64,000 bases of DNA, from the sequence record MZ444140.1; one strand, given 5' to 3'. The notes under the pieces are model-generated. The model was not told where the DNA came from and did no database searches. It saw only the letters and a program-made list of their open reading frames with translations. The position numbers and the translations under genes were made by a program. Shown one piece after another: positions 2,779 through 64,000 of the stretch (positions are counted from its first letter, which is position 1; every line of letters starts with the position of its first letter).

Positions 2779-4167
2779 CGTTATGTTCAGTATGGGTCGT
2801 TAATCCATACCCGGTAGTATAATTACCACATGATAATTACCACCTGCTGCATGTCGCCATGCAGACCAGACTATATCTTCACCCTTCCTTTCGGAGTAGG
2901 GTGTCTCCCATTTCGAGTCACTTGACTCTACATCCTATTTCTAGGACCGGCGCACCTGATACCGTAATAGTCGTTGAACCTTCTCCTATTCCTAAATGGA
3001 ATGTTACGGAGCTTGGCTGCTGATTGTCCCTACCTAATCTTTTTCAAACCTTGGCTTTGTCTTTCGACTCGCAGTGGTAGATTAGTTTAACAGGATATCC
3101 CAGCAATTAGAGAGAACTCATCCCAATGATTACTCATTGGGGGAACTAGACTTGATTAACTTAATAAGGTATTTATCAAGCACCCCATTCTTTTCAAAGA
3201 TTGCTCTTCGAATAGTATTCGGATGCTTAATACCGACATCTCTTGCAAAGTGTGGAATACTTGGATACACTTTGGTAGTGTTCAAGATGGTGTCAGTTAC
3301 TTCAATTGGAGTGCCTTTTCCATTACTAGGTTTTCCAAATGAGGCTTCAATTTCTTTCTGAGTATATTTAGGGAAATCTTCAGGATTAGCAGTATATGAG
3401 AATACCAGACCATCCATGATTTCCTTACTACCTCTAACTAGATGGTAATAGGCTTTATTACGTTTAGTACCTAGTGCAAGTTCCATTTCTGCTAAGTTAT
3501 GAAACACATGTAATGTCTTAGTCTTATAGTCTAAAACATAAACTGTCTTGGTACTTTCACGATCAGCAATCTTAGTCTCACCGGTAATAAATTCAAATGT
3601 GAATCTATTTCTATACGGCTTAGTCTTATGGTCACGTATAATAACCCAAACCGTATTTTTATTAACTCCTAATACCCGAGCAAGTTCATTCATCGAGTAA
3701 TAAGTAGTCTTTTCACCAGTGGTAACATCAGTTGCAATTACCCGTCTATTTTCTTTTCTTAATCCATTTTTGTAAGCATGCTCAATGTTTTCACCACGAG
3801 TCATCCATTCCAAATTGGATGGTAAGTTATTATGTTTGTTGCCGTCTTTATGATTGACTTCATATGTTGGTCCAGGAGATGGACCATGGAATGCAGTACA
3901 AACTAGAATATGCGCTCCCTTACTTTTTGATGTCTTTTCATCATTTTTTGCACCTATATTGAGATATGTCCCAATTGATGTTTTAGTAAGGAAGAAATTA
4001 CATATTCTATTTAACCGCTTATGACGAATCGTTCCTAAGTTACTAGCCTCATAAGCTGAGTATCCAGGAATATCTCGCCATTCAATTTTAAATGAAGCCG
4101 GATCAAAGACGGACACTACTCCGTTTTGTTCCATTGTCTTTTACCTTATTTGGTTATTCAATTGTCC
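2779..4167 (-). mobile_element. Group I intron (1389 nt) containing a homing endonuclease gene
   Basis: Exon 1 ends in U and intron ends in G; core elements P AATTGCTGGGATATCCT (3108-3092), Q AATCAGCAGCC (3025-3015), R GTTCAACGACTA (2979-2968), S AAGATATAGTCTG (2879-2867). Confidence 0.92.
3130..4134 (-). CDS. Intron-encoded HNH homing endonuclease, NUMOD4-HNH with NUMOD1-like C-terminal repeats (phiKZ gp56 equivalent)
   Basis: WRDIPGYSAYEASNLG (NUMOD4); HILVCTAFHG...VNHKDGNKHNN..NLEW...N (HNH); three Y/F-x-S/N-helix repeats. Confidence 0.92.
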   Translation of the reverse strand: MEQNGVVSVFDPASFKIEWRDIPGYSAYEASNLGTIRHKRLNRICNFFLTKTSIGTYLNIGAKNDEKTSKSKGAHILVCTAFHGPSPGPTYEVNHKDGNKHNNLPSNLEWMTRGENIEHAYKNGLRKENRRVIATDVTTGEKTTYYSMNELARVLGVNKNTVWVIIRDHKTKPYRNRFTFEFITGETKIADRESTKTVYVLDYKTKTLHVFHNLAEMELALGTKRNKAYYHLVRGSKEIMDGLVFSYTANPEDFPKYTQKEIEASFGKPSNGKGTPIEVTDTILNTTKVYPSIPHFARDVGIKHPNTIRRAIFEKNGVLDKYLIKLIKSSSPNE

Positions 4168-33122: not shown

Positions 33123-38453
<5,331 letters not shown>

Positions 38454-60633: not shown

Positions 60634-60718
60634 GCCCGAATGGTGAAATTGGTAAACACAGAAGACTTAAAATCTTCCGACTACGGTCTTGTCGGTTCGA
60701 ATCCGACTTCGGGCACCA
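60634..60718 (+). tRNA. tRNA-Leu (UAA)
   Basis: Cloverleaf with long variable arm; anticodon loop CTTAAAA; GTTCGAATC; encoded CCA. Confidence 0.95.
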
Positions 60719-60727
60719 ATTTAAATA

Positions 60728-60803
60728 CGGAGTGTAGCGCAGTTGGTAGCGCACCTGCTTTGGGAGCAGGATGTCGGGAGTTCGAGTCTCCCCACTCCGA
60801 CCA
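60728..60803 (+). tRNA. tRNA-Pro (UGG)
   Basis: 76 nt; CCTGC-TTTGGGA-GCAGG anticodon arm; encoded CCA. Confidence 0.95.
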
Positions 60804-61774: not shown

Positions 61775-61851
61775 GGGCCTATAGCTCAGTTGGTTAGAGC
61801 AGGCGACTCATAATCGCTTGGTCGCAGGTTCAAGTCCTGCTGGGCCCACCA
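61775..61851 (+). tRNA. tRNA with CAU anticodon, most likely tRNA-Ile2 (lysidine) rather than Met
   Basis: 77 nt; GGCGACTCATAATCGCTTGGTCGC as in E. coli ileX; C4-G69 and C5-G68 pairs. Confidence 0.85.
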
Positions 61852-61975: not shown

Positions 61976-62983
61976 ATGTTTGAATTACTATTATCACCAG
62001 ATATAGGCGAAGAGTTACCCTTGGTTGGATTTAATGAAATTATTAAATTAGGTGATCTGCCTGTGGCACTAGCTGGTACAATGTCATATGTGGATGGAAA
62101 TACACTGTATGTTGGATCTGGTCATCATACTGAAGGGCAAACAGCTGCAACTGTGTTCAGACGTTTTACCATATCGCCATTTGCCGATATAGGTGCAACT
62201 GCTTCTGGAACATTCTTACCAGGGGTATCTTTAGGATTTGGGACATTACATAAGAATAACTTTATTGTTTATGGCGGTATTACTGGATGGAACTCGGCTG
62301 GTAATGGTGGTACGGGAACATCTAACTTTATACAACATTTTGATATAGCTACAGGCAATAGGGTTGAGCGATATAGTGGCCCCGTACCACTTTGGGGCAC
62401 AGCCTCCGCATCAGATGGTAATGATCTTATTCTATGCGTTAACCCAATTGGCGTAAACACAATGCGATTAAAACCATCAAGTAAGTCTTGGCTTAGCGGG
62501 CAAGACTACGCAGGTGGTGCTCGTTCAGGTCAACAGTTATTCTTTTATAATGGTTACTTTTACCATTTTGGTGGTTGGGATAATACAAAGAACATACCTA
62601 ATCTTGAAGTTTATCGATATAATGCAACTACCTTAATATGGGAGCAAACACCTTGGATGATTATACCTGCTGATAAAGGAACAATCTGGCAAGGTAATGG
62701 TTATGTAGATGGTGACTATTTTAATTACCTTAACGCTGTTAATGTCGGCGGTGTAACTAAAATGTTTGCACAACGTTTTAATATTAGGCGCCGGAAATGG
62801 GCTGAACCATTTGAACTAGGTATCGGATTCCTCAATATTTCATCTATAGCTAAAGGTCCGGATAATAGCATGATCATTGTAGGTGGATCTAAAATGCCAG
62901 TTGGTGGTGGAGCATACATGTTGAAAAGCCAATTGTTATCAGGTATCTATCAGGTAAAACTAGCACCATTAATCATTGATTAA
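61976..62983 (+). CDS. Kelch-repeat beta-propeller protein, likely virion/tail-associated
   Basis: LYVGSG, IVYGG, YHFGG and IIVGG repeats; MFELLLS N-terminus. Confidence 0.75.
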   Translation: MFELLLSPDIGEELPLVGFNEIIKLGDLPVALAGTMSYVDGNTLYVGSGHHTEGQTAATVFRRFTISPFADIGATASGTFLPGVSLGFGTLHKNNFIVYGGITGWNSAGNGGTGTSNFIQHFDIATGNRVERYSGPVPLWGTASASDGNDLILCVNPIGVNTMRLKPSSKSWLSGQDYAGGARSGQQLFFYNGYFYHFGGWDNTKNIPNLEVYRYNATTLIWEQTPWMIIPADKGTIWQGNGYVDGDYFNYLNAVNVGGVTKMFAQRFNIRRRKWAEPFELGIGFLNISSIAKGPDNSMIIVGGSKMPVGGGAYMLKSQLLSGIYQVKLAPLIID

Positions 62984-63032
62984 AATAATAATATTTATAA
63001 CTATTTAGATAATTATACTGGCACGATGATAT

Positions 63033-63141
63033 TATGTAAGAGTACTATACTAAAGTATTCTTAAATCTATCCACTAAACACACTCGGTGGTAGAACTTAT
63101 TATAGAGTGTGTCTAAATGCCAGGGGTTTGCCACCCCTGGC
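63033..63141 (+). ncRNA. Candidate pseudoknot-containing small RNA
   Basis: H-type pseudoknot 63066-63112 plus an 8-bp GC hairpin 63119-63141. Confidence 0.5.
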
Positions 63142-63268
63142 TATATTCATTGTTACTATTATAAATTCATTTATAGATGAGAAAAGGTTTTATCACCTTT
63201 TCAAAATCGGCATTTGATTCTAGTTAAAAAAACTGAATCTATGCTACATTGTAATAAAGGAGTCTATT

Positions 63269-63781
63269 ATGACTAACTCTAATCCGTTTGTAAGAACTAT
63301 TGTAAAGTACCAAGATATCCTAGATGCTTTAATTCAAAAAACGAATGAGAACTGGGTTAATTATCGATCTAATTCTATTGGCCATATTGTTATTCGTGAA
63401 TACAGGACTGTTGGATTATTTGTAGGTCGGCAATGTGGTAGTACAACTGCATTGATTGAGTTTGCTAATCGTCATCCTGGCGAATGTCTAGCTGTATTTG
63501 TAGAAGATAAAATTAAACAGGCTGTACTGGCTAAGTTCCAGAATGCTAAAGATAATATTGTTTCTTGTTTAATTACACACCAACTCCGTAAATATATTCA
63601 TCAACCTGAAGAATCATCTATTCAAAAAGATATTAAAGAAGAATTAATATCGTCTGTAAAATATATTCTTGTTGACAATGCCTCATTTAATCTGAACCTA
63701 CGCGGTATCACTGATAAAGAATTTAACCAGTGGGTTGCAGATACTTTTGGTACAGAGGTAATGGTGGTTCGTTTTAGTTAG
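63269..63781 (+). CDS. Small P-loop NTPase-fold-like protein with a degenerate Walker A
   Basis: VGRQCGSTT and YILVDNA. Confidence 0.55.
   Translation: MTNSNPFVRTIVKYQDILDALIQKTNENWVNYRSNSIGHIVIREYRTVGLFVGRQCGSTTALIEFANRHPGECLAVFVEDKIKQAVLAKFQNAKDNIVSCLITHQLRKYIHQPEESSIQKDIKEELISSVKYILVDNASFNLNLRGITDKEFNQWVADTFGTEVMVVRFS

Positions 63782-63942: not shown

Positions 63943-64000
<58 letters not shown>

Follow-up and report, generated by a model that had tools for sequence, protein, structure and literature searches.

A known phiKZ small RNA in Pseudomonas phage PA7, with a conserved core that could form a pseudoknot

Judged by its sequence, a compact non-coding stretch of Pseudomonas phage PA7, to which an earlier note had drawn attention for its interleaved pairings, is the PA7 copy of an already-known small non-coding RNA of phage phiKZ. 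The stretch lies in a window of 64,000 nucleotides (the whole piece of DNA that was analysed, to which all positions refer) from the record of PA7 (MZ444140), a phiKZ-like jumbo phage. The explanation that best fits the material overall, to which we give a probability of about 80%, is a phiKZ-type small RNA that arises by promoter-proximal termination and has a core that acts in trans. Nucleus-forming jumbo phages are a model of phage-host conflict and are used in phage therapy; to our knowledge, no small RNA of these phages has a known function, and the RNA considered here is the best-documented small-RNA candidate in phiKZ. To its description we add that conservation extends as an island from promoter to terminator across a mosaic boundary, that promoter and 5' hairpin appear to be part of an old gp297 transcription unit found in several genera, and that the invariant core is able to form a pseudoknot. 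The outcome is a concrete structural hypothesis, with the 47-nt core as the part to examine, and no new kind of element: the RNA is real and known, and the pseudoknot is plausible but unproven.

The PA7 copy of a phiKZ transcript

In phiKZ-infected cells, Grad-seq revealed an abundant RNA of ~100 nt in the gap between PHIKZ298 and PHIKZ297, which was confirmed by northern blot and which, 10 min after infection, was found in gradient fractions 3-4 while the tRNAs remained on top (PMC8545117). It was first named 3'UTR_PHIKZ298 and read as a fragment of the PHIKZ298 3'UTR (PMC8545117, Gerovac et al. 2021); the same study gave an M-fold picture with stem-loops only, found no transcription start site (TSS) for the RNA by dRNA-seq at 10 min and detected a longer transcript with the same probe (PMC8545117). 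ONT-cappable-seq and northern blotting later revised the bounds to 270595-270485(-), with a TSS of its own (PMC10914365, Putzeys et al. 2024). This TSS is common to the gp297 mRNA, and early termination within the 5'UTR of the PHIKZ297 mRNA was proposed as the origin of the small RNA: the short RNA starts at a 5' end of its own and stops six bases past a GC hairpin, and longer read-through transcripts carry gene 297 (PMC10914365). Window positions 63036-63147 align with phiKZ 270596-270485 without a gap and with 98.2% identity over 112 nt (BLAST), and the published RNA therefore corresponds to window positions 63037-63147. Locus, strand, TATG start, hairpins and terminator are the same in both phages and 110 of the 112 bases are identical; the two substitutions fall in the loop of the 5' hairpin and at the base of the terminator, where PA7 has a G-C and phiKZ a G-U pair. 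The two descriptions also differ in that expression was measured in phiKZ, for which the papers drew stem-loops and proposed no pseudoknot. By transfer across the 98% identity, an abundant RNA of ~100-111 nt is probably also expressed by PA7. The earlier proposal of a stand-alone RNA is thus borne out, both by the start motif and terminator of the stretch itself and by the 98.2% identical phiKZ transcript with its own TSS and northern signal (PMC10914365, PMC8545117). None of the 46 GenBank records that contain the small RNA annotates an RNA gene.

The elements of the unit follow one another closely on the plus strand. A promoter block running from -29 to +1 (63007-63036, conserved in the KTN4 lineage from 63007) contains a AATTATAC box at 63011-63018 and a TATG at 63033-63036, the G63036 of which is the predicted +1; the TATGTA motif proposed as a start signal is present at 63033-63038. 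Late promoters of the phiKZ non-virion RNA polymerase (nvRNAP) have TATG with the G as +1 (PMC4666361; PMC12809450), and just such a TATG is found at the mapped 5' end. The mapped TSS (270595, window 63037) lies one base off G63036, an offset that is acceptable because the error of the mapping method is 1-2 nt (PMC11512511). From G63036 the RNA, orthologous to the phiKZ transcript 270595-270485(-), extends over 112 nt to 63147. One base past the +1 begins its 5' hairpin, hp1 (63037-63063), in which the minimum free energy (MFE) fold pairs 63037-46 with 63054-63 in 10 bp around a 7-nt loop, in agreement with the small hairpin previously described after the start motif. The unit ends, according to a terminator scan, in an intrinsic terminator (63119-63147) that consists of a GC hairpin at 63119-63141, with an energy of -18.6 kcal/mol (ViennaRNA), and a UAUAUU tail that holds the mapped 3' end of the RNA (phiKZ 270485 = 63147). 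This hairpin had been placed correctly but described as 8 bp long; it has 9 bp, with U63127-A63133 closing a 5-nt loop. What had been described as start motif, small hairpin and GC hairpin thus corresponds to promoter, 5' stem-loop and terminator of a documented transcript. The stretch 63033-63160 as a whole has an MFE of -42.4 kcal/mol (z = -5.35), which none of 200 shuffles equalled.

Intrinsic terminators of the phiKZ type, a hairpin followed by TTAT, are known from 61 sites (PMC10914365). The PA7 terminator resembles them in its GC-rich hairpin, its T/A-rich tail and a 3' end a few bases past the stem, but its arms carry the G-run first and the C-run second, the reverse of the published consensus, and its tail reads TATATT instead of YTTAT. 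Read-through would add the remainder of the gp297 leader (63148-63268, plus strand), which has hairpins at 63181-63202 and 63216-63239, a second TATG at 63240-63243 and an SD. The first of these hairpins has 7 bp (63181-87 with 63196-202), shows compensated changes in KTN4, T2P and phiPA3 when the alignment is read by eye, and has a conserved AAUCGGCAU-like stretch after it. The other abuts the second TATG, 26 nt upstream of the start codon, and at its site the KTN4-type phages have a different, longer hairpin without TATG.

The small RNA occupies a 285-nt gap between homologues of PHIKZ298 and PHIKZ297, on the same strand as both and within the tRNA gene cluster of the phage. The upstream neighbour (61976-62983, plus strand) is a virion structural protein according to the phiKZ annotation (phrog_19623, E 8e-219) and has weak Kelch-like matches. 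The downstream gene (63269-63781, plus strand) matches phrog_2586 (E 7e-48), which is annotated as of unknown function, and no Pfam family scored above cut-off for it. Its sequence has a GxxxGST-type stretch and, further on, a hydrophobic run with a terminal D. These features had been described as P-loop-like, and no Pfam P-loop family scored above its cut-off. Relatives of gp297 occur in phiPA3, Psa21, Phabio, 201phi2-1, Viktualia and EL-like phages, often with tRNA genes adjoining. The gap itself is non-coding, as had been supposed: between 62983 and 63269 the only open reading frames are GTG-started ones of 23-36 aa, which we do not deem credible genes. One of them, which spans the terminator, carries an annotation in a few records. 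A small-protein reading was rejected because the region past the terminator is unconserved in KTN4.

Conservation of the RNA and origin of the gp297 leader

Around the small RNA, ~35 phiKZ-like jumbo phages, including phiKZ, are 98-99% identical to PA7 over 2.1 kb (BLAST). The RNA itself is present in 46 phage records, all of them Phikzvirus. From 16 of these records we derived six distinct sequence variants in two lineages, a phiKZ type and a KTN4/OMKO1/T2P type; the 46 records fall into five identity classes that match these six variants. Between the two lineages BLAST aligns only 63007-63147, a stretch that takes in promoter and transcript and stops with the transcript's last base. Nucleotide identity of PA7 to KTN4 is 97% in gp298, drops to 54% from its stop codon to the TSS, is 83% over the last 29 nt before the start (24 of 29 positions of the promoter block) and 88% in the small RNA, and is 61% from the RNA end to the ATG (55-61% for the flank on the gp297 side) and 71% in gp297. 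By this comparison of sequences, the small RNA stands out in the divergent KTN4 lineage as an island of conservation.

Conservation is uneven within the RNA. Ten of the 30 columns of the hp1 part are variable, as against 11 of the 82 elsewhere (Fisher p = 0.027). The 5' hairpin changes at about the background rate and its stem is kept by two compensated pairs (A-U to G-C and G-U to U-A), and core and terminator are nearly frozen among the six variants, the terminator showing a single G-C to G-U change, in phiKZ. Since the core (63066-63112) is kept nearly letter for letter while hp1 and the flanks drift, the core would be the working part of an RNA that acts in trans. Short RNAs derived from 5'UTRs by promoter-proximal termination form a known class in Pseudomonas phages, with 29 candidates, 17 of them in phiKZ (PMC10914365), and 8 such RNAs in 201phi2-1 (PMC11512511). 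The PA7 RNA is like them in having a TSS and a terminator within ~110 nt, short and read-through transcripts and conservation at genus level; it differs in that its core is kept across a mosaic boundary with a downstream gene that has diverged to 71%. With respect to KTN4 and T2P (window 61976-63781), the mosaic boundary lies at the gp298 stop codon, and the small RNA sits immediately beyond this site of recombination, where the divergent gp297 module begins; the gp297 proteins of PA7 and KTN4 are 63% identical.

The gp297 homologues of phiPA3, Psa21, Phabio, 201phi2-1 and Viktualia also have a comparable A-rich ...ATAC box upstream, with a start of the TATG/TGTA type and an adjacent hairpin. 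For two of these phages, 201phi2-1 and Viktualia, the gene upstream of the gp297 homologue is on the opposite strand, and the box is therefore gp297's own promoter, which argues against an origin of the RNA from a 3'UTR. Such an origin was the initial Grad-seq reading, according to which the RNA is cut from the 3' UTR of the gp298 mRNA and not started at a promoter of its own. The lack of a TSS in the 10-min dRNA-seq and the longer transcript seen with the same probe (PMC8545117) are in its favour, but ONT-cappable-seq placed a TSS at 270595 (PMC10914365), where the TATG is located, the promoter block is conserved, and similar boxes, starts and hairpins stand before gp297 homologues that have no gp298 upstream; we regard processing from the gp298 mRNA as very unlikely. 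From the sequences, promoter and 5' hairpin seem instead to belong to an old gp297 transcription unit common to several genera. In the leaders of these five phages, phiPA3 excepted, the hairpin is followed by the start codon within a few dozen bases. As the other genera do without the core, it follows that an old leader acquired the S1/S2 core and the terminator in one lineage. The phiPA3 leader (locus positions 1686-2000) has the same promoter and 5' hairpin, followed by a GC-rich, strongly folding insert of ~190 nt that bears no relation to the phiKZ core and closes with a terminator-like GC hairpin and then TTTATG; this leader had no Rfam match, and the insert may represent another leader RNA that occupies this position.

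The RNA has also been lost. PA1C, in which one deletion breaks the gp297 homologue, also lacks the core and terminator of the RNA, and phiHQ has neither the small RNA nor gp297; both phages retain gp298 and the following tRNA-Asn. From this joint loss it follows that the RNA is dispensable for such phages, an observation that would fit a purely cis-acting role too. A covariance model built from the six variants found no homologue at the corresponding loci of PA1C, phiHQ, phiPA3, Psa21, Phabio, 201phi2-1, Viktualia and EL, and no second copy in the window. A weak match at window 34729-34842 on the plus strand scored 15.8 bits (E 0.25) and contains an S1-like CCAUCC/GGAUGG hairpin; it lies inside a long coding sequence (34102-36798) and was put down to chance. 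Pattern scans of IMG/VR, of metagenomes (two scans) and of bacterial genomes returned only PA7 itself or unrelated chance matches, and an exact match to the core, as expected of host mimicry or a CRISPR spacer, was found in none of 185,579 bacterial and archaeal genomes.

Alternative folds of the core

Both pairings that had been described for the core exist at their proposed positions. S1 pairs 63066-69 and 63071-74 with 63087-90 and 63091-94, leaving U63070 bulged, encloses the 5' arm of S2 and has a helix energy of -11.0 kcal/mol (ViennaRNA); it could be extended by a U63075-G63086 pair. S2 (63078-85 with 63105-12; 8 bp) is part of the MFE fold and of the RNAalifold consensus and has a helix energy of -14.0 kcal/mol (ViennaRNA). 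The two helices are interleaved and do not overlap, and the loops of the interleaved model, of 3 nt (L1), 1 nt (L2) and 10 nt (L3, AU-rich), the first and last as originally given, look long enough for an H-type pseudoknot. We assessed the interleaving by ViennaRNA helix energies combined with dinucleotide shuffles and a scan of the whole window. Of 1000 dinucleotide shuffles of the 112-nt RNA, 4 attained the interleaved pairing of S1 and S2; of 1000 shuffles of the 51-nt core, none did. On both strands of the 64-kb window (128 kb), an equal or better summed helix energy was reached at six other loci (seven with this one), so that at the scale of the whole window chance could account for the pseudoknot-compatible pattern by itself. 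What distinguishes the PA7 pattern is its location within a documented and conserved small RNA. In its two interleaved 8-bp helices and its loop lengths (3, 1 and 10 nt) the core is like classical H-type pseudoknots (preQ1-I and other small riboswitches, ToxI bound to ToxN), from which it differs in having no Rfam match, no coupled expression platform, no repeats and no toxin partner.

The MFE fold of the stretch consists of hp1, S2 and the terminator, with an inner helix (63087-92 with 63098-103) inside S2 and with S1 absent. This inner helix is weak, three of its six pairs being G-U. The nested fold (S2 plus inner helix) amounts to -14.7 kcal/mol as against a sum of -25 kcal/mol for S1 and S2 before any pseudoknot penalty; with the customary penalties of ~+9 to +13 kcal/mol the pseudoknot would come to lie in about the same range, and the two folds would be about equal in energy. 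Among the six variants, seven of the eight S1 pairs are invariant and the terminal U-A pair is lost in the KTN4 lineage; in the 9-nt 5' arm of S1, variation is confined to the end base and the bulge. The altered end base of the KTN4 lineage can pair with a U or C one position onward, followed by two A-U pairs, as read from the alignment and the T2P fold. S2 has undergone two independent C-to-U changes opposite G, which are one-sided and keep the pairing as G-U. Neither helix shows double-sided covariation among the six variants and two lineages, in the case of S1 because it is almost invariant. Indirectly in favour of S1, an S1-type hairpin has -6.6 to -8.1 kcal/mol in all variants, and the nested alternative weakens across them from -14.7 to -9.1 kcal/mol. 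In its favour, too, variable sites avoid paired positions more in the pseudoknot model (3 of 32 paired and 7 of 23 unpaired positions; p = 0.075) than in the nested model (4 of 28 paired and 6 of 27 unpaired positions; p = 0.50).

On this evidence, formation of an H-type pseudoknot by the S1/S2 core is a tentative proposal, to which we give somewhat less than even odds. The interleaved pairings on which the earlier note based it stand, and the coexistence of S1 and S2 is still a hypothesis, given that S1 has no covariation and the S2 changes are one-sided. Across the relatives the pairing of S2 and seven of eight S1 pairs are kept, and the terminal S1 pair is lost in the KTN4 lineage. The core may alternatively be an extended hairpin of S2 and the inner helix, with the 5' arm of S1 (63066-63074) single-stranded, conserved as a base-pairing seed or a protein site, and with no pseudoknot at all. 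That such a nested fold is both the MFE and the centroid fold and also the RNAalifold consensus, that the published M-fold picture has stem-loops only (PMC8545117), that the inner helix stays paired through one U-A to U-G change, and that S1 is without covariation make it a real possibility, if on balance a doubtful one; three of the six inner pairs are, however, G-U, the loop-closing pair is broken throughout the KTN4 lineage, and the contribution of the inner helix shrinks across the variants (-14.7 to -9.1 kcal/mol) while S1 remains stable. The order of synthesis would also speak against it: since the 3' arm of S1 is transcribed before that of S2, S1 can form first, and S2 could then pair into its loop without S1 having to open.

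Function, known RNA classes and surroundings

Searches for known classes of RNA gave no assignment. At the gathering score, Rfam had nothing relevant to the small RNA in the whole window; at E <= 10, no ribozyme, riboswitch or ToxI was found in 62900-63350, where the best match, on the opposite strand, had 21.6 bits against a cut-off of 72, so that the suggested cmscan yielded no family at either threshold. A tRNA-like origin was also considered and discarded, neither ARAGORN nor the Rfam tRNA model matching the stretch. The RNA contains no tandem repeats, the one repeat detected, a 10-nt AT repeat, lying outside it at 62988-63007, and the neighbouring gene, the gp297 homologue, had no PADLOC or ToxN-like match. 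The idea of a type III, ToxI-like antitoxin thus finds no tandem repeats, no ToxN/AbiQ-type neighbour (Pfam, PADLOC) and no Rfam match to stand on, and that of a nuclease-resistant cap no Rfam match at the gathering score or at E <= 10; against a small ribozyme speak the lack of an Rfam match at E <= 10 and the full-length RNA mapped in phiKZ, which bears no sign of self-cleavage (PMC10914365, PMC8545117). The suggestion of a ligand-binding leader for the downstream gene proved right in part, as the RNA is the 5' leader of gp297 but no pairing such as a ligand-controlled attenuator would need was seen in its sequence. When the sequence was read by eye, no convincing complement to the 5' arm of the terminator was seen upstream that could act as an anti-terminator; the sole overlap, of 5-6 bp, is between GGUGG (63086-90) and a CCACC that spans the loop and 3' arm, as against a hairpin of -18.6 kcal/mol. 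For a ToxI-like antitoxin mimic, self-cleaving ribozyme, exonuclease-resistant cap or known riboswitch there are the pseudoknot-compatible pairing and the phage context only, and, with neither a second copy in the window by the covariance model nor a pairing that competes with the terminator in addition to the negative results above, membership in any of these classes is highly improbable.

In the mechanism that we favour, nvRNAP would start at G63036 of the TATG, and most transcripts would stop at the hairpin 63119-63141 with its UAUAUU tail, that is, by promoter-proximal termination, a minority reading through to become gp297 mRNA. The short product would accumulate because it has a hairpin one base from its 5' end and the GC hairpin at its 3' end. 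S2 is most likely always present in the folded core, and S1 may form first during transcription and so give rise to the H-type pseudoknot, which is the least certain step and one that we put below even odds. The core probably acts in trans, most likely by offering a protein-binding surface, as suggested by its conservation and by the sedimentation of the phiKZ RNA, which is deeper than that of free tRNA and fits protein binding. A more specific proposal, that the core pseudoknot is the binding surface of a small ribonucleoprotein, for example a decoy for a host RNA-binding protein or nuclease, and that it entered the ancestral gp297 leader as an insertion confined to the phiKZ species group, is speculative and rather improbable.

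One explanation does without a trans-acting core. The RNA would be devoid of a function of its own, the locus serving as a terminator that insulates gp298 from gp297 together with the gp297 promoter, and the short transcript would be a stable by-product of an attenuator that sets the dose of gp297, for which one may cite the TSS shared with the gp297 mRNA and the 17 such 5'UTR-derived short RNAs of phiKZ (PMC10914365), the common loss of RNA and gp297 in PA1C and phiHQ, and the other genera that have the same promoter and 5' hairpin without the core. A promoter and a terminator, however, need no 47-nt S1/S2 core, yet it is the core that is kept best while the flanks and the gp297 coding sequence diverge more; no anti-terminator pairing was found in the sequence, and the RNA sediments deeper than free tRNA (PMC8545117), so that the by-product explanation has a low probability.

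The surroundings of the RNA vary among close relatives. On the plus strand of the window, ARAGORN and Rfam place tRNA-Leu(UAA) at 60634-60718, tRNA-Pro(UGG) at 60728-60803 and tRNA-Met(CAU) at 61775-61851, and the window end truncates another tRNA, of which the 5' part is present (63943-64000, plus strand) and which corresponds to tRNA-Asn in relatives. In phiKZ, tRNA-Asp and tRNA-Asn precede gp298 and tRNA-Met lies farther upstream, and relatives align to the window as two pieces with extra DNA at the tRNA site; from the two-piece alignment and the differing order it follows that the tRNA cluster varies among close relatives. Elsewhere in the window, a group I catalytic intron is found at 2847-3167 on the minus strand (Rfam RF00028, 85.3 bits, full-length model match).
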